Assembly: GCF_016433145.1 (NCBI RefSeq)
Contig: NC_058133.1
Coordinates: 246,778,201 to 246,841,389 of the forward strand
Origin: Gracilinanus agilis
Lineage: Eukaryota
DNA length: 63,189 nucleotides
Direction of reading: 5' to 3'
Under the pieces are notes generated by a model. The model ran no database searches, was not told where the DNA came from, and saw only the letters and a list, made by a program, of their open reading frames with translations. Positions 10,314-39,500 of this stretch are shown here, in pieces; within the stretch, counting starts at the first letter, position 1; each line of letters starts with the position of its first letter. The position numbers were made by a program, and so were the translations under genes.

Positions 10314-10745
<432 letters not shown>

Positions 10746-10782
10746 GTTCCCTCAGAAGATTCCTGAGTTAAAAAAATCAAAA

Positions 10783-10970: not shown

Positions 10971-11330
10971 ATGTGGGAGCTGAGGTCTTAACATGTGACC
11001 TCCCTGCATGGTTCCTCTTCCACAAACCTTTCCTCCTATGCGGCAGCCAGAGAAACCGCAAAGCTGGTTTTGTTTGAGTACTTGTACTTCAAAGAAGCAT
11101 TTCTATATCCTTTTCGCCAACATTCACTTCCTAAAATGGGTCTATCTCTCAGGTAAAAGATCAAATTTCTAATTGGGAAATTGCTTTCCACTTTGTCTCT
11201 GATAGCTCCTGATTTCAAGTGCTGTGGTGTGATGTGAACAGAAATGTGGCTAAGCAAAGTCATCTTGAAACCAATTTGAGGCCTTTCATTAATGCTTTTG
11301 GATTCCTGTATTTGACTGCATCAGGTTTTT
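10971..11330 (+). pseudogene. Decayed H3 pseudogene
   Basis: ATG at 10971 lies exactly 24 codons before GCA GCC AGA GAA ACC GCA (AARKSA-like); 11172-11219 ATT GGG AAA TTG C-T TTC CAC..ATA GCT CCT GAT TTC AAG (IRKLPFQ..IAQDFK); GAA ACC AAT TTG..ATT AAT GCT (E.TNL..IHA). Confidence 0.6.
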
Positions 11331-11959
11331 CTTCCTTAACTTCCCGTCGCTTATCCCTCATTTAAAAGGTTTTATAGCGAACAGACGTGTAGTGGAAAGG
11401 AAAAACACCAGATTAAGAGAGAAGACTGTAAAGATACCCACTCACACCGGAAGCTGTACTCAATCCTCTGCTGCCACCAAGCGACTTTTTATTAACAGGT
11501 CATCCCCCCCTTTTTGTCTGCTGCAACACCTTCAATCTTTTTTCCTTTTTATTTCTTGTAATATCTTCAATATTCATGTAATCTTATTAAAAGTTTAGCT
11601 ACACGTTTAGAGTAGAGGAAATTGAGTTAAGTCATTTACCCAGGATCACAAAACATGTAAGTAATTAAGTCAACATTCACATCTAAGTCCTTTTATTTCA
11701 AATTTAGTACACTGCTGCTTCCCTACTGCTGGCTTATATATTTATTCTCACAATTGGGTAGTCTGTTCTGCCTTCCCTTGCCACGTGCCTCTCCATACTT
11801 TCCCCATTAAAGAAAGGTTCACTTCTTTTGAATGCAGCACTGAAAAATTGTGAGGGAGAGAGTGAAAGGGAGGGAAGGAGGGTAAATAACTGTTATATAA
11901 TCTTTCCTGAAAATGTAAGATCCTAAGCTTTAGAGATGTAATAATCCTTACTGATAGTT

Positions 11960-12480
11960 TACTTAGATTTTAGCAAAGCATTTGAAGTTTCCCAAGCTAT
12001 TCATGTGGAAAAGGTGTAGGGAAATTTCTAGACTAAGCACTTAGAATTCAAAGCTGGTATTTAGTTGAACCTAAATAGAAAATCATTAATGACTTGAAAC
12101 TAACCTTGAAGATCTTCAGTTGAGTATCCTAGGGAATCTGTTTTAGGATTGTTTTTGTTTAGCATTTCTATCAATGACTTGAATAAAAGTATAGATAACA
12201 TATTTATCAGCTTTGCATGTGACAAAGAGATAAGTGCATAGCTTAAAGGCTTGGTGTTTATGGATCCCAAAAGGTTTTTGTCCAATAAGATTAAATTTAA
12301 TAGGGATCAATGTAAATTCTTAAGGCTTAAGGAAATTGATTTTAAAAGGATAACATGAGTGAGGTGTGGCCTTTCAGAAATTTTTCTGAATATGACCTAG
12401 AGGGTTAAACCAATAAAGAGACATGGTACCCGCAAAAAATTAATATGATTTCAGACTGCTTTGAGAGGAGTAGCATCTAG
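11960..12480 (+). mobile_element. Ancient CR1/L3 RT fragment
   Basis: GATTTTAGCAAAGCATTTGA (DFSKAF) and TTTAGCATTTCTATCAATGACTTG..ATCAGCTTTGCATGTGACAAAG (FNIFINDL..IKFADDTK-like). Confidence 0.65.

Positions 12481-14639: not shown

Positions 14640-14641
<2 letters not shown>

Positions 14642-14685
<44 letters not shown>
14642..14685 (+). repeat. (TG)n microsatellite inside the LTR
   Basis: Direct reading. Confidence 0.97.
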
Positions 14686-14687
<2 letters not shown>

Positions 14688-14869
14688 ATACCCCCACATT
14701 TCCTTAAGTGAGAGGAAATGCTAAATGTGCTAAACTGGGTGACAATTCAAAAACAACTGACTGCTCCCTGGGTAGTCCTAAGAAAATTCTAAAACTGTGA
14801 TTGGTCCACATAAACTGGAAGGAATGAATAGAAAGTGATGCAAAGAAGGGTCTTTAAAAGTAATTGCAA

Positions 14870-15436
14870 GGGTATGCCCTTCAATTGGGGAATGGCTGAA
14901 CAAATTGTGGTATATGCTGGTGATGGAACAGTATTGTGCTCAAAGGAATAATAAACTGGAGGAATTCCATGTGAACTGGAAAGACCTCCAGGAATTGATG
15001 CAGAGTGAAAGGAGCAGATCCAGAACATTGTACACAGAGACCAATACACTGTGGTAAAATCAAATGTAATGGACTTCTGTACTAGCAGTAATGCAATGAC
15101 CCAAGACAATTCTGAGGGATTTATGGAAAAGAACACTACCCACATTCAGAGGAAGAACTACAGGAGTAGAAACACAGAAGAAAAACAACTGCTTGGACAC
15201 TTGGGTTGATGAGAACATGATTGGGGATGTAGACCTGAAAAGACCACACCCATGTAACTATCAATAATGTGTAAATAAGTCTTGACTGACCACACATGAT
15301 AAAACCAGTGGAAATGTGAATTGGCTACAGTGGAGGGGGGCCGGGGGTTGAGGGGGTAAAAGGGAAAGTAAAAACATGACTTATGTAACCATGGAAAATT
15401 TTTCTAAAAATAAAAAATTATTAAAAAAAATAAAAA
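14870..15436 (+). mobile_element. 5'-truncated L1 (ORF2 C-terminus plus 3'UTR)
   Basis: CPSIGEWLNKLWY-type sequence, G-rich 3'UTR tract, A-rich tail; 15-bp TSD TAAAAGTAATTGCAA at 14855-14869 and 15437-15451. Confidence 0.92.
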
Positions 15437-16064
15437 TAAAAGTAATTGCAACTTTCTATGACCAGCTCTTTCGCCTTTGAACTTGACCTTGGAGGGGCTC
15501 TGGCTTGGGACCTTGGACTACTCTTGGATATCTTCCTTTAGGACTACCACATGGGTGAGTGAAAAGGCTGACTCCTTGTCTGTCTCCTGAAGGGACTAGC
15601 TTCTGGAGAGGTCCCTCTGTCTTGAAGGAGGCCTCGTGGCTGGAACCCTTGCTTTATTCACCACTGGAACTTCCAACTTATGGTTCTCTGGTGGAGAGTT
15701 AAGGGGCCCTGCCTGGTTCGAACTGGGTGGGAGTAATTATCTAATGTGATAGGATAGATACCTTCTCTACTCTCTCTCTCTCATCTCTCTACCTTACTCT
15801 TTCCCTCTTCATTTTATAAATAAATTGGTATAAAGTCATTCTGACTTGTGTAATAATTTTGGTGATCACATTTCTCTTATATTTAGTCCAACCTTAATTT
15901 CTAACCCTTACAATGTCAGTCTCTTTGCTAGAAAAACCCAAATGGTTTCTTTTGCCAAAAAAACCCAAATGGTATCATAAAGAATTGGACACAACTGAAC
16001 AACAAAAAATAATAGCTAACATTTATATAGTGTTTACTATGTGCCAGGCACTGTGCTAAACATT

Positions 16065-16490
16065 TTATTTATTTATTTTTTAAACTTTACCTTCTGTGTT
16101 AGAATAAATACTAAGTATAGATTCTAAGGCAGAAGAGCAGTAAGGGATAGGCCAGTAATGGCAAACATTTAGAGACCAAACCAAGTGGCCCCACCACCCC
16201 CTTTACCGCAGAGAGGGGAGGGAAAAAGCACTCTGATTGGTCTGCTAGTTAGAGGGGTGGATGATGTCCTCAGACAAGCATGGACAGGGGGAGGGGAGCA
16301 GCCCAGCCCCACCTCCCTCTGGCTTTCTAATAAGGAACTTTGGTGAACTCTGTGACACTGAGTGCCCCACTCTGGCACATGTGCCATAGGTTCACCACCA
16401 TGGGACTAAGTAATTGGGGTTAAGTGACCTGCCCAAGTCACACAGAAATGTCTGAAGTCAGATTTGAACCTAAGGCCTCCAAATCCCAAC
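16065..16490 (-). mobile_element. tRNA-derived SINE split by a hAT MITE
   Basis: SINE tail 16065-16152 continues at 16404 with GGGGTTAAGTGACCTGCCCAAGTCACACAG. Confidence 0.7.
16153..16403. mobile_element. hAT MITE with CAGT(G)ATGGC(G)AACCT-type ends
   Basis: Left CAGTAATGGCAAACATT, right ATAGGTTCACCACCATGG (degenerate inverted repeat); subterminal GGCACATGTGCC; degenerate 8-bp TSD GGATAGGC/GACTAAGT. Confidence 0.65.
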
Positions 16491-16889
16491 ACCTCCCAAT
16501 GGTGCTCTATCCATTTTATTTTTACAAAACCTTGGGAGGTAAGTACAATTGTAAAATCATTTTACAGTTAAGGAAACCAAGGCAAGCAGAGGTTAAATGG
16601 CTTGCTCAGAGTCATACAGTCAGGTCATTTTGTCTGAGACTGTCTGAGGCTCATTTTGAACTCTAGTCTAACTGTACTGACTCCAGACCTAGCACTCTAT
16701 GTCTAGTGTGTTCATTAATAAGGGCAAATCTCTTGCTCTAAGTTGGGAGAGTGCCATTTTTTCCATTTGGGAGCAGTTCAAGGAGTTCAAAGCCCTTAAT
16801 ATCTTATCCTGACCTTCCTATCTTTCCAAGACTTCTTGTACCTTTATCTACCACTACCACTACCTCTAAGAACTTTTCACTTCAGTAAA

Positions 16890-17240
16890 ACTGACCTTTC
16901 TGTTCCTTGAACAAGACTCTATCTCTCAGCTCTGATCATTTTCACTTGATGTCCCCCATTTCCTATTTTCCCTAGCTTCCTTCAAATTCTAGCTAAAATC
17001 TCACTTTCTACAGGAAAACTTTCCTAATCCCCCTTAATTCCAATGCCTTCCTTCTGTAGATTATTTCCTATTTATCTTCTATTAGAACTGATCATACATA
17101 GTTGTTGACAAATCATCTCTCCAACTAGATTGTGAATTCCTTGAGGGCAAGAACTGATTTTTGCCTTTCTTTATATCCTCAGCCCTTATATTTGGTATAA
17201 AAATAAATATATAATAAATGCTTATTGACTGACTGACAGA
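16890..17240 (+). mobile_element. L2 3' end
   Basis: CTAGATTGTGAATTCCTTGAGGGCAAG..AATAAATGCTTATTGACTGACTGAC. Confidence 0.75.
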
Positions 17241-19703
17241 TGCTCACATGACCTACAAACAACTGTATACAGTGCAAAGTATCAGCAAAATTCTCCCAGT
17301 AGACCCTATCCCAAAGGATACTCTGTCTTCTTCAGGCCCCTAACCACTTAGACAGATCAACGGACACCATCTAGAAATTAGTGCAGATGAAAATTTTCTG
17401 TCAGATCCCCCAAGACTCTTTCACCTGCCACTATACATCCTGTAATGAAACCCACTGAAAAGATCTGCCAAAATCCCCATTCCTTAGGTATCCTCTATTT
17501 CTGGATTAGTGGCTGCCAAATTTCAGTTACGTATGCCTTTCTCATAAATTATTGATTACCTAGAAAAAAATTCTATTCTTCAGGTGCCAGGTCCTTATGT
17601 ATGGGGATCCACTGAGCCTCTAAAAAGGCAGATTGTAAAATAGTACGTCAGATTTTTTTCAGGACCATAAAACAAAGAATAGGAAAATAGTAGGAACTTG
17701 ATGGGGAAAGGAGTTTATAAATCATATGTATATATGATCATAGAATTTCAGATTTGAAAAAAACCTCAGATGTAAACTACTCCAACCTATAACTGGATGA
17801 ATGCTTTCCACAGCCTCCTAACTAAGTCTTTGATATACCTCTCTACTAATGAGGAAGTGCTACAAGGTCCTAACTCAGTCTATTTCAATGTATGGCTGAA
17901 AATTGGATTTTCCCTAAAACAATCCAAAATCTATCTCTATATAATTTCTACCCAATGCCTTCAACTGTTTTCTAGAACCAGACAAAAGAAGAAAGCATTT
18001 CCCATCTTGAAAGAACTTCAAATGCTTGAAGACAGTTATCATGTTAATCACCTCCCCAAGCCCACTCTTTCAGAATAAATATCTCTGTAAATATTTATGC
18101 ATAGTGTTCCCAAACCAATTATTAATCTCCTATTAGAAAGCAAACTTCTTGAGGACTCAGGTCTGTAGAAATTATTATTTTATCCCAAGCACGTTAGCAC
18201 AGTGCTTGACACATAGTAGACGCTTAATAAATGCATTTTTATTCATTAATTCATTCATTCATATCTGCTGTTCTTAATTACATTATGGCATCAGTTGCAA
18301 TGAGATGCCAATTTTTAAAACTTCTTGAAGGCTTCTGCTTAGTAACTAATGACATTAATAGACATGAATTCTATTGGATTCATTGACTAAATTTTACCAG
18401 TCCCAAGCTAGTTTCTATCTAGAAGCTTCCCATAAATACCATTCCCACCATACATCTTATCTTTGAAGACAATGTGTTAGATGTGTTTGACGTGTCTCTT
18501 GGTCTACAGTGGTGAGAACGTACAGGCGTTTTCATGGGAGTCAATTTCTTCATATTTCATTCATTGTTCTTTTACATTAAATTACTGTACCAAATCGGAT
18601 CTGGAAAGGAGGGGGAGAACTTGGAGACTGTTCTGGCCTGTTCTTGCAGGCACCTGTGTATGGGAATATGAGTTAGAGATTTAAAAATTTTAACATTAAC
18701 TCACTATATGCTGGTTTGTTGTGAAATGACTTCTAGGGGAAGTTTCTGTATTGTGGGGGTTTATTTTGGGATATTGAGTGGTCTGTGACTGTGGTTCTTG
18801 CCATGAACCTGTGTTGTTTTTCTATGTCTCCTTGGAGCTGAATAAGGATACTGAATGCAATAGTTTCAATGGAAGTGAATGTCACTGTAAAAAGAATCAC
18901 ATAGGGTAAACAGAGTGTGGAATTTCCATCCTCCTGACAACCTGCTAGGCTGGTTTGTCAGAGCTGGTGACGAGCTGTGCTAAACATCATGGCTTTGATG
19001 GATTCCTGCAGTGAGTGATCAAAACTAAACATACATAGTTACACATCCTGTCCTTAGTCCAAGGTTCAGCTGCTTTGAGCTCTCTGTGTGCCTAGTCTAT
19101 TAGGAAATTGATCAGATATGATTAGAGAATTTTTTATATTGACTTCATCCAATTTTTTCCATTTCCTTAAGACAACTAGTCTCATCACCAACTACATCAT
19201 ACAGAATTTAGCTGATAGCAAATTTTAGCTCAGGTGATTAACTAGTTAGTGATAAGAGAATTTCTGGCTCAACTTAATTACCTCTTTATTTAAAATGAGC
19301 CTGTCAAGTATGGTTAGAGTGCAAATTCCAGCTTTATACCTTTCATCTGACACAGATATTCCCCTTCTGCTATCTGTTCCTTGATATTTAAATCTTTGCC
19401 TCCTATTCTGCCCTCTGTAAAATACCATTGTATCCATCCTGCCTACGTAACTAAAACCTTTATGAGGTTCCTGAACATGGCTGCTCAAGGCTCACTGGTT
19501 TTTGTATATCATGGGTTTATGCTGAGCATATTATAACCTTATTGTTAAAATGTCTCTGCATATTGATAAATATGATCAGCAGCAGTATCTATCAACAAAT
19601 CTTTGGACAGTTTTTATGTCACAGGTTAGTAATAGAGAAAAGAATGGTTAGAAAACTCATCACCCAGGAGCAAGAAAAAAAAAATCCCTCTAGGAAGGAT
19701 TGT

Positions 19704-19772
19704 AGGAAGGAAGGAAGGAAGGAAGGAAGGAAGGAAGGAAGGAAGAAAGGAAGAAAGGAAGGAAGGAAGGAA
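19704..19772 (+). repeat. (GGAA)n polypurine microsatellite
   Basis: Direct reading. Confidence 0.97.
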
Positions 19773-20513
19773 AAAGATATTCTATGGAGAAATATCTTAG
19801 AGTAGCAAGTGAAAAACATGTTGAAAGGGGAGGTGAACTCAACATTCTGATGACAATATTATTATACCTTGATCTTCTCTGCCCCTTTATGTTAGAATAG
19901 AGTATGTGGTATGATAAAGAGGAAGAAAAAGAGATAAAGATAAGGGTGGCATGAAGGGAGAACATCCAAAGACAGAATTTTCCTGACCAAAATATAATGG
20001 ATTTGATTTCCAAACTCAGAATTTCACTGGCTCACAGTATCATATTAAAGCAACCCAACAGTCATTTCCTCCAAAAAATGAATTAAGCTACAGTGAGCAG
20101 TTTGATTGTGATTTTTTTTTCCTGACTAGAGAATCCTAATTACAGAAGCAGGGAATGGAAAAAAAAATTTATTAGGTCTTCCTTTCTTTTTTGTCCTACG
20201 AGTATCTTTTCCATAAGTATGTTGGAAGAGAGATGAAAATTTTGTTTTAGAGGCTTTCATCTGAAATGAAGAATCCTGGATGCTTCTACCCCCATCTAGA
20301 TGAACTGCAGGACTCAAAAGTTGTTCTGTCATTACTCTTTTTTGCCAGGAGATGGTGCCAACTTGTACTTAGCCACACTTAGTATCCCCATTTGGTTGGT
20401 TTGTTCCTACAAGTAAATCACTTCCATTCCACAAACTCAGCATGAAAGTTGATTTGAGGGTATAATTAAGATAAGTAGAAAAGTATCCGAGGGAGAGTAC
20501 ATACATGACTTCA

Positions 20514-20557
20514 ATATCGTCTTCCAAAGTAATATATATTACTTTGGAAGACGATAT
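20514..20557. repeat. Perfect 44-bp palindrome with no spacer, running into (AT)n 20554-20574
   Basis: ATATCGTCTTCCAAAGTAATAT followed directly by its reverse complement ATATTACTTTGGAAGACGATAT. Confidence 0.97.
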
Positions 20558-21207
20558 ATATATATATATATATACTTTTTTTTAATGGTTCTTTGAACAT
20601 TTTAACCCAAGGAAATTTCTTCAAAGATAGGAATCTCAAACATATTTTGTGGTAGCTGGACTTAGTGGTATCCTGAGAGAATTGAGAAGGTAACCATCTT
20701 CATCTATGAGTAACACTGTCATACTGTTTCCAATAGAAATGCCTCACTCAGCCTTTCCCCTTCCTGTTTACTAAGGCTGTTATCATTGAATTCCCTCTTG
20801 ACTTTCTGCTTGTCTCCTTTTGTACATAGTAAGGAAAAATGACTTCCTAGATGCCTCTCTTGCTGACATTACCATCTCTCTAGTCTTCTAGCTACTCAGT
20901 TTCTTCTGTTTTCTTTGTCCATGGAAATTTCATTAATTACATGTGAGATGAATTTAAAAAGCATTTATTAAGTAATATCTGTGCTAAGCACTAGAGCTCA
21001 AAATAGTCCTTGCTTTCAAGGAATTCACATTTTATTAAGAAGAGGTGATATATGCAGGAAAACAGAATGTGCAGAAAAGATGCAAAAGTAGAGGTATGCT
21101 AGAGCCAGTGCTGAGCTTGGAGAGCAACTACTATTAAATTTCTAGTGTGAGCATTTACATATCAGAAATCTGCAATGATACAAATCAAATTTGTTGATTA
21201 TCTAGAC

Positions 21208-21409
21208 CAGTGATGGGCAAACTCCGGCCCGTGAACCAGATGCAGCCCTTCTTCATAATCTTTCAGTCATTAATAGGACTTAGTATCACAAAAAATACAA
21301 GAATTTTGTAAAATGTATCATTGTTATTTTTTAATAAATTATATTGGCCTGCTAAAGTTTTTTTTTTCCTTTCCTTTGGCCCCCTCTTTAAAAAGATTGC
21401 CCATCACTG
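21208..21409. mobile_element. hAT-Charlie-type MITE (202 bp)
   Basis: Perfect 13-bp TIR CAGTGATGGGCAA/TTGCCCATCACTG; TCTAGAC on both sides (NTCTAGAN target); sits in an older, probably hAT-Tip100-like relic at ~21088-21520. Confidence 0.85.
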
Positions 21410-21572
21410 TCTAGACTTAAAAACAAATCAGTAATACAGACTAAATTAAATGTGTATATATACATTATTACCCTCCCCTCAGAGCCTAGATGTTAAGCAT
21501 TTGCCAGTATGCTTCTGTATTGCTTTATAAATACTGTTTGCACTCAGGAGGGTGATAGAAAGCTAAGGAATT

Positions 21573-21770
21573 ACCAGATTGGAAGTCCAGTGACTGCAGA
21601 ATAATAAGAAGAAGAATATTAACTGGCATTTACATAGCACTTTAAAGTTTGCAAAGTACTTTACATCCATCACCAGATTGGAAGTCCAGTGACTGCAGAA
21701 TAATAATAAGAATATTAACTGGCATTTACATAGCACTTTAAAGTTTGCAAAGTACTTTACATCCATCACC
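21573..21770 (+). repeat. Near-perfect tandem duplication (99 bp + 96 bp)
   Basis: ACCAGATTGGAAGTCC..ACATCCATC repeated; copies differ only in the AAT/GAA tract. Confidence 0.95.
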
Positions 21771-21799
21771 TCATTTGAGTCTCACAACACCCCTGAGTA

Positions 21800-22210
21800 T
21801 TGTTGGTGTTGTCATCTTGACTTTCAAGTGAATTGGACTTAAGTGAGGCAGAATTGCACAAAGTCATCATCCTTTCTCTCTCTTCCAGAGGCACCCAAGT
21901 CTAGTAGTAAGACAAAAGCCAGAATGGTTGACAATGGGCCAGGATGCAGTGGTTGATCTTGGCATCTTTGATGTCTGACAAAATTCTAAGTACTCCACAG
22001 TGGCTGCTTCAGACATCTTCATAGTAGTTGGAACAAATTGGTCTCATCAGCCCATTCTGCCAGAGGAAGTCTTTACCTGGGTAGAGGGTGGACATCCCTC
22101 TAAATAACTGATAGGTTTTTCTGTCAGTCACCTTTAACCTGGTCTAGCCCATCTGCTGAGATGGTTTTAGCAGAGTGTGGTCACTGCACATGATATAGCT
22201 TCTTAGAGCC
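21800..22210 (-). mobile_element. RTE-related element 3' end (RTE LINE or RTE-dependent SINE)
   Basis: Antisense of GCAACTCTGCCTCACTTAAATCCAATTCAC- and GCCAAGATCATCCACTGCATCC-like RTE tail; (ACA)n-like terminus. Confidence 0.65.
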
Positions 22211-23093
22211 ACAGGTAAGAAGAGTTGGGAGACAGATAGGCACCAGAGGCCCTGAAAAGTGCCTCCACACCAGAAGTATTAGACTCCCTGAACCCCCACA
22301 TACACCCCTGAATATAGTAGCAAAGCAGATGACAATTTGTTTTCTTTAGTTTTATTTCCATTGATATTATCCATTCCTTAGCCATTTCTGAAAATGAGAC
22401 ATTATCAAGGACTTTAATGGAAAAAACTTTCATTCCCATGTCTTTAATGGCTGCTGCTACTGATAAAACTGAGGTTAGTGAGTGCCCATAAGGGCAGACT
22501 CTTCAAGGATTGCTTTCCTGGTTAATAGCTGGGTGGGTCAGATTAGAAGCAGTGCCAAAGGACTGGGGTAGAGGGATGATACCATTCTCAGTGTGGTTAC
22601 AGAGTCCTAATCTGACTCCTCCATGGTTTGAATAATTTTCTACAAGAAAAACTGAAAGTAAAATAATATCTTCTCAGAGAATAATCTCCCCAGGGAAATG
22701 CTCAACTGGGAGAACACGTCCCTAATAAAAGTAGTGTACTACCATTCTCTTATAATATTGTCTTATCTCATGAGAGCTAGGTAATACAGTGGATAAAATG
22801 CCATGAAGTCAGGAAGACTCATCTGAGTTCAAATCTGGCCTAACATTTTACTAGCTACATGACCCTGGGCAAGCTACTTAACCCTATTTGCCTCAATTTC
22901 CTCATCTATAAAATGAGCAGGAGAAGGAAATGGCAAACCATTCCAATATCTTTGCCAAGAAAACCCCAAATGGAATCATGAAGAACTGGTTATGACTAAA
23001 GCAACACAGAAACAAAGAGTTGTCTATCTTTGTCCCTTACATCACTAAGATGCCTTAACTTCAGTTCCCTTCTATTGGCCAGTTCACTTTAAA

Positions 23094-23835
23094 CATTTAT
23101 TAATATTCATTTTTAACATGGTTACATGATTCATGCTCCCACTTTCCTCTTCACCCCCTGCTCCCCCACCCCACCCATGGCCGATGCACATTTCCACTGG
23201 TTTTAACGTGTCATTGATCAAGACCTATTTCCAAATTGTTGTTAGTTGCATTGGTGTGGTAGTTTCGAGTCTACATCCCCAATCATGTCCACCCCGACCC
23301 ATGCGTTCAAGCAATTGTTTTTCTTATATGTTTCCTCTCCTGCAGTCCTTCCTCTGGATGTGGGTAGCATTCTTTACCATAAATCCCTCAGAGCTGTCCT
23401 GTGTTATTGCATTGTTGCTGGTACAGGAGTCCATTGCATTCGATTTTACCATAGTATATGAGTCTCTGTGTACAGTGTTCTTCTGGCTCTGCTCCTTTCG
23501 CTCTGCATCAATTCCTGGAGGTCTTTCCAGTTCACATGGAATTCCTCCAGTTTATTATTCCTTTGAGCACAATAATATTCCATCACCAGCATATACCACA
23601 ATTTGTTCAGCCATTCCCCAATTGAAGGACATACCCTCATTTTCCAGTTCTTTGCCACCATGAAAAGTGCAGCTATAAATATTTTCGTACAAGTCTGATT
23701 ATTTATGATCTCTTTGGGGTACAAACCCAACAATGGTATGGCTGGATCAAAGGGCAGGCATTTTTTATAGCCCTTTGAGCATAGTTCCAAATTGCCAGCC
23801 AGAATGGTTGGATCAGTTCACAACTCCACCAGCAA
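23094..23835 (-). mobile_element. 5'-truncated young L1 with almost no poly(A)
   Basis: ORF track 23446-23790 is L1 ORF2 C-terminus; TGGCCAGTTCACTTTAAA duplicated at 23076-23093 and 23836-23853. Confidence 0.92.
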
Positions 23836-24220
23836 TGGCCAGTTCACTTTAAAATAAATTGGAACCACTTAAGCACATATTGGCCATGGTGGAAGTGTAG
23901 GTCATGTAGATCCAAAGTCTTTGAGGGGATTGCATTAGCCAAGCATTCCTCAAATGTTCAGAAGGACTGAAGCACTGAAATCTTTGTCTATTCTCTGTTA
24001 CAAATTTCTTTGGTGTAGAGGAAACATTTAGTAGTTGTCCTGCACTTGATTTGCATCATATATTAAATACTTTTCCACTCTTCTTCTCCTGTTTGGAGAG
24101 GCCCTAGTCATGAACCAAACCTAAATAATAAACTGATTTTTCTCCACACTGATAGATAATCTAGAGTAGTGGTTTACAGAATTAGAGAAATTGGAAGAGA
24201 GGAAGAAAAAAAAAGTCTGA

Positions 24221-24223
<3 letters not shown>

Positions 24224-24279
<56 letters not shown>
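24224..24279 (+). repeat. (TC)n microsatellite at a SINE tail
   Basis: Direct reading. Confidence 0.97.
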
Positions 24280-24282
<3 letters not shown>

Positions 24283-24493
24283 TTTTTTTTTTAAAAACCC
24301 TTACCTTCCATTTTTAGAATCAATATTGTATATTGGTTCCAAGGCAGAAGAACAGTAATGGCTAAACAACTAGGGTTAAGTAACTTGTCCAAGGTCACAC
24401 AGTAAATGTTTGAGGTCAGATTTGAACTCATGAAGATGAGTCTTCCTGATTCTAAGCCCCATGCTCTAGCCACTGCACCAGTTAGCTGTCCCC
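24280..24493 (-). mobile_element. Marsupial tRNA-derived SINE (older subfamily)
   Basis: AAACCCTTACCTTCC tail and CAGTTAGCTGTCCCC head (antisense). Confidence 0.8.
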
Positions 24494-25229
24494 TGATTCT
24501 TCTCTTTAGAGGGCTAGGCTCTCTTATGACTGATCCTGGTCTGCAGGTGTATAGAGAGGTCCAATACTCCTGGGTCTCACAGTGAATCTTATTGTTACAC
24601 CAGTCATTTCATATTGCCCACTTTCATGCTCTAAGCAACTAGATGGCACAAGTACAAATTTTAAAATACCATATGAATATTATGATATTGACATACTCTG
24701 GGTTTCAGTTAAACTAGCCTAAAAACTATGTTGTATGTAGTAATTATCTGTCTCTCCTTTCATGTTTTTGCACAAGTGTTTCTTCTCAACTTGAACAAGC
24801 TCCATCACCACTGCCTTCTCCTAGTATCTCTAGCATGAAGGAGGTAGCCTGAGTTTGGGGAAAACATTTTTGCCCCAGTAAAAGTAAGCTTAGAAATCAA
24901 AGAAACAGAGCTACAGGGTTTTGAAAAATAAAGACCCTCAGGTTGGCAAGGACGGGATCAGCCTTAGAGATTTTCTGCCCCACCAGCATATCTGATAAAA
25001 TTAGCCTCTGAGAAAATGCATTATCTCACTAGAACAAACACAATCTTTGTAGCTCCTGAGACCCCAAGGATAACAGTTATAAACCCAAGGTAAACACATT
25101 TCCCCCCAAATCAAAATTTAAAAATCCTGCCTCTTATTATTCAACCTCTCGAATAAAAAAATATGACTGACTAGTCTGAACTGATAGGCTCTTTTTGCCT
25201 GGCAGTAATGTTACCCTAAGGCTATGTAA

Positions 25230-25268
<39 letters not shown>

Positions 25269-25769
25269 CAACTTCCTTGTTTCAGTACTCTACTCTTGGC
25301 TTACTTACTGCTTTTTTAACCAGCCTCTACATTTATTGATTTCTAGTCAAACAGACAAAGGTAGGAGAATTACTCTCTAGAGGATCTTAGGAACTCTCCA
25401 GGTTAAGTAACTCCCCAATACTAGTTTCCTCCAAAATACAACATAAGTCATTTGTCTGTTATTGACCTCTTTGTATAACTTTCACATTCTTTGGGTTTAT
25501 TTATTTTTGTACATGTCCTATTCCCCAGTAGAATCTAAATTTCTGGAAGAGACGGACTGTTTTATTATATGCCTTGTATATAGTAGGTGTTTAATGAGTC
25601 TTTGTTGAACTGAACACTAAAGTCCAGAAAGAGAGGAATCCTCCACAAAGTATACCTAAGCAAGCCTACATCGATCTTATGACTGTGCTTTTTCAATTCA
25701 AATTATTTTATGTAAATATTTCAGGGTAGAATCATTGAAATAGTCAAGTCAAATAAATAAGTCAACATT

Positions 25770-26560
25770 TATTAAATGACTATCATGAGCCAGGCACAGT
25801 GCTAAGCTTTAGAAATGCAAAGGAAGGCAAAAAACAGTTCTTGCTTTGAAAAAGCTCACAATATAATAGGGGAAACAACAAGCAAACAACTATATACAAA
25901 CAGGGTAAACTGGAGAAAATATTATAGAGAAGGAACCAAGATAAGGAGAACCTGGGAAGGTTTTCTACAGAAGATGAGAATTTAGCTGAGGGAACCAAGA
26001 AAACCCAGGAGTCAGAGATGAGGAGGGAGAAAGTTACAGGCATAGAAGATGACCAGTGAACTTTGCAGTTGGGAGATCAAGTGTCTTGTGAAAGGAACAG
26101 CGAAAAGGTCAGTGTCACTGGATCATAAAATACCTGGAGGAGAGTAAGATACAAGAAGATTAAAAAGATAAAAGAACTCAGATGTGAAGGGCTTTAAAAG
26201 ACCAACAGAATTTCATATTTGATTCTGGAGGTGATAGGGAGCCACTAAGAGCCACTAGAATTTAGGAAGGCAACATATTCGTACTTCAGAAAAATCAGTT
26301 TGATAGTTATGGCGGGGTGGGGGGGGGGGGTGAATTGGAATGAAGAAAATTTAATAGTAGAGTATTGCCTGCACCAAGGTAGTGGTAGTGTGAGTCAAAA
26401 AAATGTTAACAAGGTTAATTTGACAAGACTCAGAGACTCATGAGAGAACATGACAGTTGTTCACCTAGATGACTGAGAGGATAGTGCTGTCCTTGGAAAG
26501 AAATGGGAGGGCAGAGGGGTGGAGGAGATAGAATTCAGTTTTGGACTTGCTGATGTCATA
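25770..26560 (-). mobile_element. L2 fragment
   Basis: AAGTCAACATTTATTAAATGACTATC..CCAGGCACAGTGCTAAG antisense L2 tail followed by purine-rich L2 body. Confidence 0.7.
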
Positions 26561-26573
26561 AGTCTATGAGATA

Positions 26574-26784
26574 GGGGACAGCTGGGTAGCTCAGTGGATT
26601 AGAGCCAGACCTAGAGACTGGAGGTCCTAGGTTCAAATCTAGCCTCAGACACTTCCCAGTTGTGTGACCCTGGGCAAGTCACTTGACCCCCATTGCCTAA
26701 CTCTTACCACTCTTCTGCCTAGGAGCCAATACACAGTATTGATTCCAAAACGGAAGGTAAGGGTTTTTATTTAAAAAAAAAAAA
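26574..26784 (+). mobile_element. Monomeric SINE1-like SINE
   Basis: GGGGACAGCTGGGTAGCTCAGTGG head, GGTTCAAATC B box, AAGGTAAGGG..poly(A) tail. Confidence 0.9.
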
Positions 26785-27110
26785 TGTCTGAGACATACTA
26801 ATAGGCAGTTGCAGATGCAAATGGAGGTCAGGATAGTTCATGAAAATAGCTTTCCTGCGAGTCAAAAATTCAAATTTTGCCTCTGATACATACTCTGTAT
26901 GACTCTGGACAAGTCATTTTAACTTCAATTAAGTGCGGAGCAGCATGGGCAGAGACTACCTATATGGATGATATCACAAGACTTGTAAAAAAAAAAAAAA
27001 AAGAAGGAAAAAGCAACCTTTCCACATTCATTTATCCTTACTTACATATCTTTGAAAGTTTTCATTCTTAATTACACTATAGCATTCCGTTACATGATAC
27101 ACTGCTTCTT

Positions 27111-27175
27111 AAACGCTCCAGATGAGTTTTCTACCCAGTAACTAGTGAGGTCTTTAAATTCTAATATTCTATTGG
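27111..27175 (+). promoter_or_regulatory. MHC-class-II-type S-X-X2-Y module of the BTN2A promoter
   Basis: S-like AAACGCT 27111-27117, 16 nt, X CCCAGTAACTAGTG 27134-27147, X2 TGAGGTC, then ATTGG 27171-27175, 23 nt after the X box. Confidence 0.75.
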
Positions 27176-27229
27176 ATAAACAGGCTAAAAATCTACCAAT
27201 CCCAAGGCAGGTCCTGTAAAGTGGTGCCT

Positions 27230-27372
27230 GGGCTCAAACTAAGAGGAACAACATCCTCCTGCGGCTGAGCAGAGGTTCCTGTGGTTACTGAAGAAAGGCT
27301 AAGAAAACTCTGTCCCCTTCTTTCTGCAACTTTGGGCTTTCGGTTTGGCTGTCCCATGGGGAACCCAGGCAG
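27230..27372 (+). other. Putative non-coding exon 1 of BTN2A (5' boundary uncertain)
   Basis: Strong donor CAG|GTGAGT at 27372/27373 downstream of the SXY module; GC-richer than flanks. Confidence 0.55.
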
Positions 27373-30300: not shown

Positions 30301-30479
30301 CTTCTCTAAAGCACTTGTGTATTGCTGCAGTATATTCATATTTCATCCCCCTCCTGGATTGTATTGTCCAGGAGAATGAGGACTACATCATATCTATGGT
30401 AGTTTGTTTTTTTTTAATCTTCTCTTAGCACAGATCTTTTGACACAGTTAAAATAATGTTATTATCTTCTCTAGAAATT

Positions 30480-30564
30480 ATGAATATGGCCTATTTCCAA
30501 GACCATTCTGTGCTAAGTGATCTTGTAGCTGTCCTCTTCCTCCAGCTGCTCACAGTGATCTCAG
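30480..30564 (+). CDS. BTN2A2: BTN2A signal-peptide exon ([28 protein letters not shown])
   Basis: Acceptor TCTCTAG 30474, hydrophobic core, donor CAG|GTAAGT. Confidence 0.85.
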
Positions 30565-33500
30565 GTAAGTATTTCTCTTTCCCAACATGGAGACTTCTCA
30601 AGAGGCAAAAATAATTTCCTCTCTACACTTTTCTCCTATGGAAGGTAATTGTCACCCTCATCTAAGGAAGCCCCTGAAGCTAGAATACCATGGGAATAAA
30701 TTTATCCTTCTCTTGAAAACTTATTCTATTTTCATCCCCCACTCACCCACACACATCTCTGATATATTGCCTATAACCAGTTTCTCTATAACTCTCTTCC
30801 TTTGTTGAACAGCTCAATTTACTGTGGTTGCACCTGCTAAGCCTCTCCTGGCCATGGTAGGGGAAGATGCCATATTACATTGTCACCTCTTCCCCAAGAA
30901 AAATGCTGAGCAAATGGAGGTGAGGTGGTTCCGTTCCCAGTTCTCTCCAGCCATTTATGTGTATAAAGATGGGAAAAATAGAGATGAAGAACAAATGGAA
31001 GAATATCGAAGCAGAACAACGTTTATGAGAGACAATATCAAAGACGGACATGTTGCTCTGAGAATTCACAATGTTACAGCTTTTGAAAATGGAAGGTATC
31101 ACTGTTATTTCCAAGAAGGCAGATCATATGATAAGGCCTTTATAGACTTGAAGGTGGCAAGTGAGTTACTTGGTTTTGCTCTTTGACCTTTCCTCAACTT
31201 GACCCAGGGGGAACCAGACTCAGAACTGGCAGGTCAGCAACCATTTATTGGACACTTACAATATGGCAGACACTGTGCTAAGCCCTGGGAATACAAATAC
31301 AAGTAAAAAATAACACAATCCCTGACCTCAAGGAGCTTATATTCTAATGGGATCCAGGAAGACTACTAAAGAATGGTAGGAAAAGAAATCCAGAGAATCA
31401 GGAGATAGGAGAGAAAGGAATAAAGGAGTAAACAAGGTTGACCTGGGTACTTCCTTAAAATGTAGGTTCTCTGAGGAACTGACCTATGAAAGGAAGAAAA
31501 ACCCTCATTGACTTTATGGGCATTTTTAGTGACCCTTCTCTTTTAACTAGACAATCAATCCCCTTCCTACTAGGTAGGCCATGTATAGCATTTATTGAAA
31601 AAATAATCATAAGTTTTATTTAAACATAACCCAAAGTGAGGAGTGAGGAACCTTTGTGGCCCCCAGGAAATAGCCCAGAAAGAACCACAGAACTTAAAGA
31701 TGCTATTTAAAATTCTCTTGTCCAGCCCTCTTCTTCAGGCAAAAATGAATACCCAAACTTTTCAATTCTAGTCTCCAAGAAGCTTCTTCAGGAAGTACTA
31801 TTTATCAGAAAACTCAGTTTTGAACATAGTATTGTTAAATTGGCCAGTAAATTCTTAATCTTTTTCATTAGAACCCATCACTCATTTCTTTAAACCCATT
31901 TCTTTTTATTTAATCCCTCATAGACAATGCTTTGAGTCTATTGACTTGTGCAACTCATACTACCACTCCTTTTCTCCCAGTTAGCCCTGGAATTTGGCTC
32001 TCTTAGGCCCTGTATTTCATTAAGCTGCCATCTCCTCTCTTCTTTAATCTGGATACACTGTTATCCAATTTGGTCTGTCAGAAAGAATACATTCTTTTTC
32101 TCTTCCATTCCTTTCTGAAAATAGCTCTCTACCCTTCTTTTACTTTACTACAAAACAATATTCTAGTGGGTCATAACTGACCAAAATGAATAGTTACAAA
32201 GTCTGTAATAGTCTTTTCAGTCAATTCTGGTCTTCTATTAAAGCTTTTGAGGGAACCAAACCTAACTTTTTTCTTGGTTTCTTCTCTGTCTTCTTGGTCC
32301 TCAGGTCCTCAGCCCCTTTGCCTTCAATCAGCTAGTTCATTATCTAGATTAGCTATTATCTCTGTTCTTGCTTTATTAATGCTAGAGATACTTCAGCCCT
32401 TTCAGAATTCACCCTTCCAACTCTTAATTTCTGGTTACAAAAACCACCAGCCCCCCTTTTCCAGCCCCACATTGTCTACATAACACACAGGACTAGTGAA
32501 GAGCTAAGCCAGATATGCTTCTCCATATCATGAGTCTTTCCCTTGTTTCTTGTCTTGTTTCAGATCACAGAATAAAGTATGGTTGAGCATTTTATAGGCT
32601 CCTATGAATCCTTTATGATTCTTCATAAGGTAAAATAAGGGCAATTCTATTAACTAATATGTAATGATAGTTTGAACAGTTTCATGGGATCCAAGGGCTT
32701 TTTAACCTACATCTATGGAAATCTCCATGTAAGCTATATTCTGATATCCTTAGGAAGATCCTGACTAAGGGCAAATGGGCCAAAATCTGAAAGACCAAGA
32801 AAAAACCTTGTTGGGGATTGGGTCAGTGAGGAGTTCACAATCCAAAGAAAGATTCATAAGAAGCCTATCCAAGTAAATTCAAATCTGTGGTTCTAGGCAA
32901 TATTTTATAGGCAAATTACACCAATTGCTTACCATCATCTATGTGATGTATAAAATTGATGTGACAAAACCACTCTTTTGGGGTGATTGCAAACTGGTTG
33001 TTGAAAAACCCATTCAAGTATGTTTCCAGTTTGAAACTGAATAGAAATATGGATTTAGGAGTAGTGTGTAGTTTCCAGATTTAGCCATTTTGCCCCATTA
33101 ATTCGCATAGACATGACATTTGCCCTTTTCCAATCCTCAGAAATTCTTGTCCTCAATGATTTCTCAAAATGAATGGTTAGTCAATCTGTAACAACATCTA
33201 TCAGTTCTTTGATCTTATAATCAGATTCTGCTAATTTCAATACATACAGTTCTTTCTCAGCTTGAGTCTGAATTGAATTGAATCTCAACACAACTAGACC
33301 TCTCTAGAAACAACAGTAAAACAAGATATTTTATGAAAAGATTAAAATTATGACTTTTAAAATTTCTGTTTTCTCTGCCTTCAATGATTTTTTCCTGACA
33401 ATTTAGGAAATTTGGATGAATAAAATTTTCTCTAGACCTCTTTGCCTAAAATAAGTAAATATTAAAGACAGAATTTTTTTGTCTTTTATTCACTTATTTG

Positions 33501-36500
33501 CTTTCTAGCACTCTTCTCTTGTTCTCATGCAGTCACACTTATCTAGTGAGAAGGATCAATTTCCATATTTGAATGCTTCTTTTAAATTTTTCAACTCCAT
33601 AGAGAGTTGCAGGTTTAGCCAAACTTCACCTTTATGATATTTTTCTTTCCAATATACTTTGTTCTAGAACAAGAACTTTTTTAAACCACAGCCAGTTCTC
33701 TTTTTAAACCACTGATATTAACACTTCAGTTCTTTCTATCATAGTTTTCCTACTGATTCTTCGCTACTATAAAAATCAATTGTTTTGCCTGTTTAAGTGT
33801 TCCCTCCACTAACACAAACTGCATTTTCTAAATGCCTTATTGGATTAAAAAAAAGTTTTAGTTACTATAACTGAACCCTGCAACAAATCCAATAATGAAG
33901 CATGAGTCTAATTAGCAAGTGCCTAATAGAATACTACCAGTAACATTTATAGGAATCTTGAATGAGGAAAAAATCATATGATATAATACAGTACAGGGTT
34001 AACATTCCAGAATAGTCACCATTCAATTCCTTCCTGGACTACTTCTCTCTAAGAGTTTATTATAAGGATTATCAGAATCCTTACCTTGAATTTCAAAAGA
34101 GGACAGATGCTGTCAGTAGGTAAGTCTTAGAGCCAATTACCCCAAGTGGTAGGGTAGCAACTAGTTATATTTGTTTGTAACCTTTACTGAATTTTATAGG
34201 AAGACCTTAACCTTGTTCTTCCTAATTCCTGAAGGGAAATACTAGAAAGAATTTTAGACTATAGAAATGATATTCCTTACATAAATAGAAAAATTAGAAA
34301 GAAAGGTGGTTGTTGTTGTTTTTAATTCCACAAATTTAATTTGTTGGCTCCCACAACAGAATACCAGTAGGAAAGAAATATTCAAACAAATCACCATCAA
34401 AATTCATAACGATGATGACAAACGATTCTTAAGAACCTAAAATGAAAATAATAGCATACTAAAATCTAAAACCTGCCTCTGAAGGACTTGAATTACAGCC
34501 AGGTGAATCTATGATGAAAAGTTCATGAAGCACAAAAAATTGCCAACAGTGCATTTGGTACATAATTCCAAAATGAGGAAAACTGAAGAGCCTCTATTTC
34601 TCCACAAGCTTTCTCCATGACAATATAAATATCAGTATTTATGTGAGGGCCAAAGGGTAAGTCATTGCCAGGAATGTATTTGAAGTTGGGTTGTTTTTGT
34701 TTATATAGATAAAAAAACTCCACTTCTAAAATGAGCTTAATGTTCTTAAATCTTCAGATTTAAGCTCAGGGGCTCTCTTTTCTCTATGCCAAATGCCTAA
34801 CTCATGGGCAGTCTTTTTCAATCTCGGAATTGATCTTAGAGACATCTTGACCTTGGCATCTGTTCAAGATTCTCAGTAGCCTTGGTCATAGGTATCTACT
34901 TCTTTTCTAGGGTGGTTGGGGAGAGGGAAGGGGAAAACTTTTAACAAGCTGATAACCACAATTAACCTAAAGATAATATAATAGAGTCAGTGATATTAAG
35001 GGGTGGTGATTATCTCGGGAAGGGTGACTTATTTAGCTTAATTAAATAGTAAGAACTATGAGTGACTTTCACATAAGCTACTATTTTCTTAGATTGGGGT
35101 TGGGAGGACAGAGTGAGAGAAGCATAAAGTTTTTTATAAGAAAAGGGTTGAACTTTTAGCATGAAGATTAATAAGGCTACAAGTAGCTGTGCTTTCCCTT
35201 CCCCTGAAAAAAATTTAATTCATTACATGCAAGCAAAAAAAAGACTACAAGTAAGATAGTTAATACAAAATTTTTTTCTGCCTGGGAGAGTTAGTCATTA
35301 GCTAGAAAGTTAGAAGTATTAATAACATTAATAATTATAAAATAGTAATGCTAATAATAATAATAAAATGTTGTAGCAGTGAAAATAAGGCACTGGATAA
35401 TGAAAAAAATATAAACCAATACAGTTTTTCTTTGTTCATTTGTTTAATTGTTCGTTTTGGAAAATTTAATTGTCTTTGTTTTAAGGCTTCTATAATGCTG
35501 CTGCTTCTTCCTTTTCTGTTTTTGAGAGAATAACTAAGGATACAGACTTTCCCCATGATCTCTAACTACACAAGTCTGAAAGTCCTTCAATTTTTCCATC
35601 TGTAAAATAACAATAATAATAATAATATCTCTATTGCCTATCTCACATAGTTGTTATAAGGACCTAAAGAGTTAAGATATATGAAGTTGTAGTATAAATC
35701 AAAATTATTATTATTATTGGATTCCTCTGTTTCTTGAAAATAATTTAATTCCCAAACCTGCTTGCTGTAGTTTTGAATGGTTTAAACCCTTAAAAGTGTT
35801 TGAGGCAATTTGATTTTTTTTTAACTTGAAAAAATTTATTTAATTAATTATTTTCCTATGGTTACATGATTCATGTTCTTTCCTTCCCCTCCTCCTACCA
35901 CACTCCAGTAGCCAGTGAGCATTTCCACTGGGTTTTACATGTGTCATTGATCAAGACCTATTTCCATATTATTAATATTTGCATTAGGGTGATTGCTTAG
36001 AGTCTACATCCCCAATAATATCCCCATCGACCCATGTGATCAAGCAGTTGTTTTTCTTCTGTGTTCTTTCTCTGGATGTGGATAGTGTTCTTTCTCATAA
36101 GTCCCTCAGAATGGTCCTGGATCATTGAATTGCTGCTAGTAGAGAAGTCCATTACATTCAATTGTGCCACAGTGTATCCATCCCTGTGTATAAGGTTCTG
36201 TTTGAGTCAATTTTGAATGGTTAATTCATTCAAGAATTTAGAGATTTTATTCATTTCTTTTTATTCTATTCATTGATTCTATCCATTCAAGAAATTAGAA
36301 CATGACATGAAAAAATTCACCAAAATAGCAATAAAAATAAAGCAGATAACAATTTTTGTAAGTACTACTCTAGATCGTCTGAAAATGTAAAAGTGTAAGA
36401 TAATGATACTTGCCCTTAACAAACCTGTAGTCCAATTTCCCAAGTTCAAGGTAGTGTTCCCTTTGATCAGCTCTAATAAAGTTGACTACAGTAAGTGGAA

Positions 36501-39500
36501 TAAACCATCTTGATTCTTCTTATTCAAGGATGACTCTATTCAAGCCCATTTTTTTCTTCTCCAGGTATGGGCTCAGATCCCCTCATTGAAATTACAGGTT
36601 ATGAATATGGATGGATACAACTAGAATGTACATCAGCTGGATGGTACCCCCAGCCCCAGGTAGAGTGGAGAAATCTTTCAGAAGAAACGATTCCATCCCT
36701 GGAGGAAAACTTGGTTCCCAGTGAAGATGGGCTGTTTGTTGTGAAATTGTCTGTGAATATCACAGATCACACAGTGGTTAGTGTGTTCTGTTCCATTCAA
36801 AACTCCCTTCTCAACAAGGAGTTGTTGACAGTGGTGTCTATACCAGGTCAGTTCTCAGCTTTAGATTATCCTTACAGAGTCATAGTCTTTATAGTCATTG
36901 GAGCACCATGAAGGGAGTATTTAAAAGGAAAATTTCTACCAGCTGTAAACTATGGGGCTAGACCAGTTGTCTCTATACTTTTTTGATCCATTAAAGTGTT
37001 TTAATCTCAACAAATACAACAGTTTGTTAAAATCAAAATTAGATTTGGAAAGCAGTTTAACACATCAGTAAAAAAAAAAAAAGCAATACTTCTCTGGGCT
37101 TCATTTGGATTCTATTTTGGAACAAAAAGTAATGTCCAAAGAATTTGGAAATAGGGAAAGAAGGAAATAGGGGAAAATTTCAACCAGAAAAATAACCCTT
37201 CCTTTTCCTTTTCTGAGTGGGGTCACAATCTGAAAGAATCTCCTCTTTTTTTATATTTGGAAAAGAGACCCTGGAATGTTTTGGCTCGTTTAACTCTTTC
37301 TCCTTTATGTCTTTTACCATAGAAACTGTTTGGATTACAACTTCCATTCCCTCTGAGAGCACTTCTGAAATCCCAGACCTAATAACAACTCCCAGTCCTG
37401 AAGAGGTCTCTACCTGGATGGTTGCTCTCACTGTGGCCTTGCCAGCTCTTGGCCTTTTTATTGCCTGTAGTATTTGTTTCACATGGAAACAACACAGGAG
37501 AAAAAAGACTCTATTTATAGAAAAAGAAATTGAATGCGAAGAAAAAGATGAAAAGGGGCAAGGTAAAAAAGAAAAGGAAAGGCAAAGATGACATTTTGGG
37601 GAATAAAAGAACCTCAGCTTCTGATATGGGATGCTGGAGAAGAAAAAACTGAAAATATATATAAAATATAATATAACATAATATAGAAATAATGTGTCAA
37701 TAATCTGCATATGTATATATCATGTCTCCTAAAACTCCATTCCCACACCACTAAACTTTCCTCTTAGTTAACCAAATGCAAAAGTATTTTCATCATAAAG
37801 ATATGAGTAAATGGAGATACTAATACTAATCTAGATGATGCTTCATTGTTCTTGGTTCCTTGGTTTCAGAGGACATTCATAAAGGGATTATTCTCTGTTA
37901 TATATTCCAGAAACAGATTGCTAAATCTTTCTTTCTTGAGATCCATTGGTTCCTTTCCAGAGAAATTCAAGGAAGAGCTCAGTAAATTCAGCATTCTCCT
38001 TATTCTCTAATTCCTCTTAGAGATAATTTGCTTGTTTCTCATATAATAATTATATAAAAGAGTTCTAATCTTTCTGTTTGTCCATTGCAGGATGGAGAAG
38101 GACCCAGTTACATGCTGGTGAGTGACTCTTATGTTCTCTGTGAATCTAAGATCTCTCTTTTCTCATTCCTCAGGCTACTACTACCTCCCCCCCACCCAAA
38201 AAAAAAGATGGGAACAGGACAGAACAGTCATCTAGAGGGCAAACTAAATACAATACCAAAAATAAAAGAGTTGAAAGTCTCTGTAAGATTAAGCAATTCC
38301 CCTGGGACTACCATGGAATGATTTGGAGGAATCATTGAGTTTCATTATCAGTTCTACAGTCATTTCACTGGCTTCTTTGTTATTTTAAAAGATAAAGTCC
38401 TCTGGAGATGGGAAGTCCTGAGTTCAAATGTGATCTTAGACACTTTCTAATTGTGTGACCTTGGGCAAGTCACTTAACATCTATTGCCTAGCTCTTTCAG
38501 CTCTTCTGCCTTAGAGCTGATACTTGATATCAGTTCTAAGACTTTTTAAAAGGTAAGGGTTTTGTTTTGTTTTAAGTAGTCGTTGGCATAAGCTTATTGG
38601 AGGAAGGAAAGTATCTCAAACCACTAAACCTGTTGTCTTCCATATTTTGAATTAACAAAGTCATTAAACTCAGAACTTTCCTTTGGCTAATACAGTGTTT
38701 CCCTTACTATGATACTATGAAATGGAAGGTATCTTAATGGCCATCTAGTCCAATCCTTATCCAAAAGGAATCTCTGCTGTGTCTCAGGCTCTACTTGAAC
38801 ACCTCCAATGAGAGGGATTCAAGGCAACATGTTACATTTTGATAACACTTATTATTAACATTTTCCCAACATCAAGCATGAATTGGCCTTCTTATAATAG
38901 CCATCTATTGTTGTGCTTCTTATAAGATTCCATTAGCTTTTTGTGGCTGCCAACTTCAGTTGAGAATGCAGTCCACTAAAACTCCCAGATATTTTTCAGA
39001 CAGACTGCTGACTATCTTGCCTTCAACTAGCAATGCTGACTTTTTAAACCCAGCTAAAAGATTTTACATTTATCCCTGTTGAATTTCCTCTCATTAGATA
39101 CCATTTAATGATCTAGCCTATCAAGATATTTTGGGATCCTGACTCATTCATTGTGTTACCATCTCTGCCAGTTTTGTCATCTGTATTTCTGATCATTTTA
39201 TACAAACAAAATTGTTAAATAACACAAGGCTAAATATAGATTCCTGAGGCAGTCCAATGAAGATCTCTTCTCAAGTTGATATTGATATTCTTTGAGTTCA
39301 GTCATTCAGTCAGTTCAGGATGCATCTAATTGTAGTATTGACTGGTTCCCATCTCTCCATTCATTCCACAGGAACAGAAATTATAAGCCACTTTATGATT
39401 TGTTTTTCTAAAAAAGTAGGAGGGCTTTAGCTACCATTTCTTCTCATTAAAAAAAGTTAATAACATAGTAAAATAAAAGGAAATAAGGATAGTCTGACAT

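Follow-up and report, generated by a model that had tools for sequence, protein, structure and literature searches.

A promoter module of X box, Y box and CCAAT box upstream of a marsupial BTN2A2-like gene, probable ortholog of the RFX/CIITA-targeted SXY module of eutherian BTN2A2

Genes and repeats in the window

The window, by which we mean the whole stretch of 63,189 nucleotides from Gracilinanus agilis that was analysed here, contains three histone genes which could be assigned by Pfam. Histone H3 (3747-4157) and histone H2A (5054-5446) are encoded on the minus strand, histone H2B (10365-10745) is encoded on the plus strand.

The plus strand furthermore encodes a butyrophilin, for which Pfam identifies a V-set domain, a BTN-type C2-set domain (C2-set_3), and PRY and SPRY exons. 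Its coding span (30480-44652), determined by Pfam and by tblastn with marsupial BTN2A2 proteins, comprises 14173 nt and equals the gene span recorded for the BTN2A2-like protein P0277 of G. agilis; gene ranges recorded in this way are coding spans only and are silent on the annotated transcription start site (TSS). The exons for leader, IgV, IgC and transmembrane (TM) region are 100% identical to P0277 in tblastn. Exon 2 (30475-30564) carries the start codon at 30480 and the signal peptide, its translation is the N-terminus of P0277, and a donor GT follows at 30565. The IgV exon (about 30813-31160), the IgC exon (from 36567), the TM region (about 37322-37585) and the PRY/SPRY exon, which ends with the stop codon at 44652, were all located on the plus strand by tblastn and Pfam. 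The intron preceding the PRY/SPRY exon contains a run of N (43000-43164), which is an assembly gap or a mask.

For the assignment of this gene, the PRY/SPRY exon was compared to a representative library, which led to a BTN2A2-like protein of the koala and from there, by word search and cluster listing, to BTN2A2 proteins from marsupials and eutherians. The named relatives closest to the window gene are all BTN2A2 or BTN2A2-like. Its identity to eutherian BTN2A2 is 68% in the IgV domain and 70-74% in B30.2, in comparison to 40-61% for BTN1A1. The gene thus combines an IgV-IgC-TM-B30.2 organisation closest to BTN2A2 with a location in the neighbourhood of the histone cluster and of BTN genes. 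According to its domains, its named relatives and the tblastn identities, it is a marsupial BTN2A2-like gene, which agrees with the sequence-only reading that had placed a regulatory module upstream of a marsupial BTN2A.

The same reading had also proposed a relic minus-strand butyrophilin with multiple Ig domains (18715-24120), so that the module would be flanked by two butyrophilin genes. We had to abandon this part, as the relic could be detected neither by tblastn nor by Pfam. A tblastn search of 11000-26655 with seven BTN proteins gave nothing relevant at E values up to 1, and no Ig domain was found by Pfam in the eight ORF pieces. A repeat found at 35809-36200 has further copies at 23091-23481 and 15021-15441. 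Further downstream, a retroviral pol remnant with RNase H, integrase zinc-binding and integrase core domains is spread over several frame pieces of the minus strand (52703-54687), and LINE-1-like ORFs are located at 58.8-62.6 kb of the window.

Elements of the promoter block

A conserved core promoter block (27064-27210, plus strand) with S-like, X1, X2-like, Y and CCAAT elements could be delimited by alignments to other marsupials and to a duplicate at 18272-18415. The module within it is located 3.3 kb upstream of the exon that carries the ATG. Just upstream of the block lies a SINE-like repeat (26695-27003) with a 16-nt A run at its end; further copies of it were found at 16060-16152, 24282-24351 and 45364-45453, and the module is situated outside of this repeat.

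All motifs described by the sequence-only reading were recovered at the positions and spacings given there, and all of them are on the plus strand. The heptamer AAACGCT (27111-27117) is a candidate S box, for which a distance of 15-17 nt to X would be expected, and is followed after 16 nt by the 14-nt X box CCCAGTAACTAGTG (27134-27147), by AGGTC (27148-27152) and, 23 nt after the X box, by ATTGG (27171-27175). The predicted RFX site, the X1 box in the wider sense (27131-27147), consists of CTACC-C-AGTAAC followed by TAGTG and was recognised by comparison of its 12-mer to other species. It contains an RGYAAC half-site within a CCYAGNRAC context (CCCAGTAAC at 27134-27142), and RFX binding is predicted from these letters. 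An X2 box is expected to be a CRE-like sequence (TGACGTCA or TGCGTCA) abutting X1. At this position the window shows TGAGGTCT (27146-27153, plus strand), which contains TGAGGTC and is weakly CRE-like; the motif TGARGT is kept among the marsupials. The Y box (27166-27178) comprises the ATTGG core, an inverted CCAAT and putative NF-Y site, together with flanks that are conserved among the marsupials. It follows X in the same orientation, and the distance between the two boxes is constrained. A second CCAAT box in forward orientation (27196-27200) is found 20 nt after the Y box.

Short motifs of this kind might co-occur by chance. By our own estimate, a loose combination of RGYAAC and ATTGG is expected about once per window, and the X core alone, if two mismatches are allowed, gives four matches in the window where 4.1 are expected, which is the level of chance. 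It is therefore the composite of several elements and its conservation that carry weight. The loose X1 pattern CCYAGNRACNRRTG occurs only once in the 63 kb window, namely in the module, when both strands are scanned. The X core of eutherian BTN2A2 together with ATTGG 28 nt later, with at most one mismatch, has its sole match in the window at 27131-27175, and this composite was not reproduced in any of 100 dinucleotide shuffles of the window.

Conservation among marsupials

Alignment of orthologous promoters had been suggested as a check of the module. We compared the 10 kb upstream of the ATG from Dromiciops (monito del monte), Sarcophilus (Tasmanian devil) and Phascolarctos (koala). The promoter block aligns in all three species with about 70-74% identity in blastn, the combination of X, Y and CCAAT is kept, and the donor of exon 1 is intact.

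The mean identity of the module among the marsupials is 78% against a background of 55%, which places it only in the top 14% of all 65-nt windows. The first intron as a whole aligns among the marsupials with about 70% identity. Footprinting with marsupials only is therefore not discriminating, and conservation among the marsupials is by itself not decisive for the module. Its individual elements differ strongly. The Y box with its flanks reaches a mean identity of 0.97, the S-like heptamer only 0.62, with the variants AAACTTT, AAATTTT and AACTTT. The 16 nt between this heptamer and X (27118-27133), which contain CAGATG, are with 0.92 better conserved than the heptamer itself; mouse and manatee do not share this spacer.

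Comparison with eutherian BTN2A2 genes

Two eutherian loci were included in the comparison, Btn2a2 of Mus caroli and BTN2A2 of the manatee (Trichechus). The X 12-mer CTACCTAGTAAC is identical in these two species and in Sarcophilus and Phascolarctos. The window contains CTACCCAGTAAC (from 27131), which differs by one T>C change and thus agrees with BTN2A2 of mouse and manatee in 11/12 positions of the X core. In Dromiciops the same base is deleted (CTACC-AGTAAC), and this is the only one of the six species with such a 1-nt deletion in the X box. Both changes affect what we take to be the variable spacer base between two RFX half-sites.

The distance from AGTAAC to ATTGG is 26 nt in Mus caroli, 27 nt in Trichechus, 28 nt in Sarcophilus, Phascolarctos and the window, and 29 nt in Dromiciops. 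The ATTGG core is invariant in 7/7 aligned sequences. It is followed by a CCAAT box in all six species, after 15 nt in Mus caroli, 18 nt in Phascolarctos, 19 nt in Trichechus and Sarcophilus, and 20 nt in the window and Dromiciops; the context CCAATCCC of this box is common to the window and mouse. A composite of X (at most one mismatch), ATTGG and CCAAT is found exactly once in each of the loci from the window, koala, devil, mouse and manatee. In the two eutherian genes the module precedes the exon with the ATG by about 1 kb.

We also scanned the marsupial loci by local alignment with the 101-nt mouse module as query, using about 650-700 tiles per locus with a background score of about 9.2 ± 1.6-1.7. 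The best tile of the koala is the orthologous place with a score of 22.5 (next best 15), and the same is true for the devil with a score of 20 (next best 16). The module of the window reaches 18.5 and is surpassed only by the tile 18201-18500. Apart from the module, no convincing similarity between mouse and marsupial upstream DNA was found by blastn, the only hint being a weak match to the koala with an E value of 0.15. At the level of the alignments, the comparison with the eutherians is the decisive evidence for the module. Chance co-occurrence of the motifs, which the estimates given above would allow for the loose pattern, is refuted by this cross-species match, as five other species, including two eutherians, show the same composite, in each case a single time in the locus and at the corresponding place of the promoter; we consider it extremely unlikely.

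The comparison supports only a part of the S-X-X2-Y module that had been claimed. Mouse and manatee have the X and Y boxes as well, and this part stands. The letters assigned to S and X2 do occur in the window, but both boxes are candidates at most: in an alignment including mouse and manatee, the S heptamer shows no recognisable conservation and has no clear counterpart in the manatee, and from X2 only TGA is common to the marsupials and the two eutherians. This distribution corresponds to what is known from the eutherian gene itself. In reporter assays of the BTN2A2 SXY module the X box and, to a lesser degree, the Y box are the critical and best conserved boxes (PMC4749920). S and X2 are the least conserved ones there, their mutation had no adverse effect, and X2 is dispensable in the human module (PMC4749920).

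The marsupial module therefore resembles the SXY module of eutherian BTN2A2/Btn2a2 (PMC4749920) in several respects. It belongs to the orthologous gene, has the same orientation and the same position before a first exon which is probably non-coding in the marsupials too, its X core is identical or one base off, and it shows ATTGG at 26-29 nt and then CCAAT. It differs in the spacing between X and Y, which is 1-3 nt longer, in the sequences at the positions of S and X2, and in the length of intron 1 (about 3 kb in the marsupials in contrast to less than 1 kb).

A second, degenerate promoter block

The tile with the highest score in the scan with the mouse module belongs to a paralog of the promoter block in degenerate form, which is located on the plus strand at 18272-18415 and aligns to 27064-27210. 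It contains the X-like sequence CTGCTTAGTAAC at 18335 and, 26 nt later, ATTGG (18373-18377), and the CCAAT is replaced by CCAGT (18397-18401). The copy also matches the BTN2A2 promoters of the devil (E value 1.5e-6) and of the koala (E value 2e-4). The similarity ends after CCAGT, and neither an exon 1 nor a donor follows. The copy is found 8.8 kb upstream of the real promoter, right after a MIR-like element.

This second copy is newly described here and probably represents, as far as its alignment goes, the fossil of a tandem duplication of the promoter. An origin of the module from a transposable element was considered as well and rejected, since there are two copies in the window and one in each of the other loci, at the orthologous place.

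Probable exon 1 and the start of transcription

A splice donor (CAG|GT at 27372|27373) is found 200 nt downstream of the Y box and about 3.1 kb upstream of exon 2. Together with about 30 nt on its 5' side, this donor is conserved in four marsupials, and the segment 27342-27381 belongs to the 40-nt windows with the highest conservation. Because of this conserved donor, and because the non-coding first exon of mouse directly follows the SXY module (PMC4749920), the region from roughly 27211 to 27372 on the plus strand is probably a non-coding exon 1, with its 5' end (TSS) predicted. An ATG at 27356 within this probable exon is conserved in all four marsupials. Reading by eye across the junction of exon 1 and exon 2 (27356-27372 to 30475) gives a short upstream frame, which runs across the main start codon in a different frame.

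It could be argued that the conserved element is an intronic or distal enhancer and that transcription starts further upstream, given that the TSS of the window gene is a predicted one. An older BTN2A2 model from Monodelphis (UniRef F6PHC4, P0280) indeed has its start in a different upstream exon. Its first residues correspond to the H2B gene region (window 10591-10923, plus strand) read in another frame and spliced onto the leader exon (exon 2). Such an H2B-derived start is due either to a chimeric gene model or to read-through from the histone gene, and it looks like a chimeric model. This appearance of the Monodelphis start, the conservation of the donor in the four marsupials and the position of the mouse module directly before a non-coding first exon all speak against a distal element, so that we regard this explanation as very improbable and keep to the reading of a proximal promoter.

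Relation to known SXY modules and their transactivators

In human and mouse, the BTN2A2 promoter is occupied by RFX and CIITA, its expression depends on both, and the response is mediated by the SXY module (PMC4749920). The control of eutherian BTN2A2 by RFX and CIITA, on which the sequence-only reading had relied, is thus well documented in the literature. Our literature search found no description of an SXY module for a marsupial butyrophilin.

There is expression evidence from a marsupial. In tumour cells of the Tasmanian devil, stable expression of CIITA raises BTN2A2 in both lines, DFT1 and DFT2 (PMC9579919). Only nine genes are significantly upregulated in DFT2 cells with CIITA; BTN2A2, with a log2 fold change of 3.49, belongs to the same set as the class II genes DA and DM and CD74 (PMC9579919). 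The devil protein that bears the name BTN2A2 is the product of the module-bearing devil locus of our comparison, and judging from the name, the symbol BTN2A2 in the RNA-seq data would denote this gene.

With the SXY modules known from MHC class II genes, from the invariant chain gene and from class II genes of the opossum (PMC1351924), the marsupial module has in common an RFX-type X box, an inverted CCAAT as Y box, a constrained spacing and the location near the predicted TSS, and with its candidate S and X2 positions it would also follow the order S-X-X2-Y. For the 14-mer of HLA-DRA, with which the sequence-only reading had compared the X box, a literature search gave two papers. In contrast to these, the S box of marsupial BTN2A2 is unrecognisable, X2 is only weakly CRE-like, and an extra forward CCAAT is present downstream. 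The products differ as well, as BTN2A2 encodes a B7-like co-inhibitory molecule and not an antigen-presenting one.

Other butyrophilin promoters of the same cluster, those of BTN3A1-3 and BTN2A1, also possess an X box and depend on an enhanceosome (PMC7753138), which by analogy may hold for the marsupial promoter too. Human BTN2A1 has an SXY-like promoter which needs the RFX complex and responds only moderately to CIITA (PMC7753138). The marsupial promoter could accordingly be a conserved RFX/NF-Y promoter without control by CIITA. That human BTN2A1 carries such a module (PMC7753138) is in favour of this idea, and so is the origin of the marsupial gene before the duplications of BTN2A in eutherians, by which it could resemble either copy; furthermore the S box, which is thought to aid the recruitment of the transactivator, is unrecognisable. 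Nevertheless, the very few genes that CIITA induces in both devil lines include BTN2A2, and in its X and Y boxes the module corresponds to that of the mouse gene, which depends on CIITA. A promoter that is independent of CIITA is for these reasons improbable.

The promoters of human BTN3A1-3 contain an SXY module of the NLRC5 type (PMC7753138), and the specificity for NLRC5 or CIITA is mainly determined by the S box (PMC4374748). The S-like heptamer of the window is not classifiable in this respect, and one may ask if the module is of the MHC class I type and recruits NLRC5 instead of CIITA. The S box of human and mouse BTN2A2 points to CIITA, however, and the expression of Btn2a2 is unaltered in Nlrc5-deficient mice (PMC7753138). 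A paper on the overexpression of NLRC5 in devil cells does not mention BTN2A2, which is a weak argument. Moreover, in BTN3A the S box is of the NLRC5 type and the Y box is a reversed CCAAT closer to X, at 13 bp, whereas the Y box of the marsupial module is ATTGG at a distance similar to that of MHC class II. Its layout is that of BTN2A2 and MHC class II, and we consider recruitment of NLRC5 very unlikely.

Interpretation

X and Y boxes in fixed orientation and with nearly fixed spacing, followed by CCAAT and located upstream of a donor, are found in four marsupial orders, and the X-Y-CCAAT architecture is also present in two eutherian superorders, represented by mouse and manatee. We are fairly confident that the module is the proximal promoter enhancer of marsupial BTN2A2 and the ortholog of the SXY module that is targeted by RFX and CIITA in eutherians.

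In the mechanism that we propose, the RFX5/RFXAP/RFXANK complex would bind to the X box and NF-Y to the Y box, perhaps also to the second CCAAT. Together the factors bound to X and Y would form the platform that recruits CIITA. BTN2A2 would then be expressed alongside MHC class II, both in antigen-presenting cells and upon stimulation with interferon-gamma. The positions of S and X2 probably contribute little, as in the eutherian gene.

Since the cis element is common to the therians, our comparison supports that BTN2A2 was coupled to the MHC class II programme before marsupials and eutherians diverged. The sequence-only reading had already suggested this for BTN2A, and it agrees with the occurrence of these X and Y boxes in mouse and manatee, with the eutherian gene being a target of RFX and CIITA, and with the induction by CIITA in the devil. 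Such an early co-regulation is mostly already implied by the papers from 2016 (PMC4749920) and 2022 (PMC9579919). On a more speculative level, the X-Y-CCAAT promoter might be older than the therians and have been present in an ancestral butyrophilin of the mammals or amniotes, and the copy at 18272-18415 might be the switch of a lost tandem paralog of BTN2A. We consider this rather doubtful. If it were true, the extended MHC would have possessed the joint regulation of a B7-like co-inhibitor and MHC class II since ancient times.

These results do not alter the accepted view of the function of SXY modules. They show which positions of the module are truly constrained, namely the X core, the Y box and the downstream CCAAT, and not S or X2. 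They also date the connection of this co-inhibitory ligand for T cells to the programme of MHC class II, at the strength given above, to the time before marsupials and eutherians separated. The module would provide the cis-regulatory basis for the published induction of BTN2A2 by CIITA in Tasmanian devil tumour cells and thereby bears on marsupial immunology, for example on vaccines against devil facial tumours which are made from CIITA-expressing cells.
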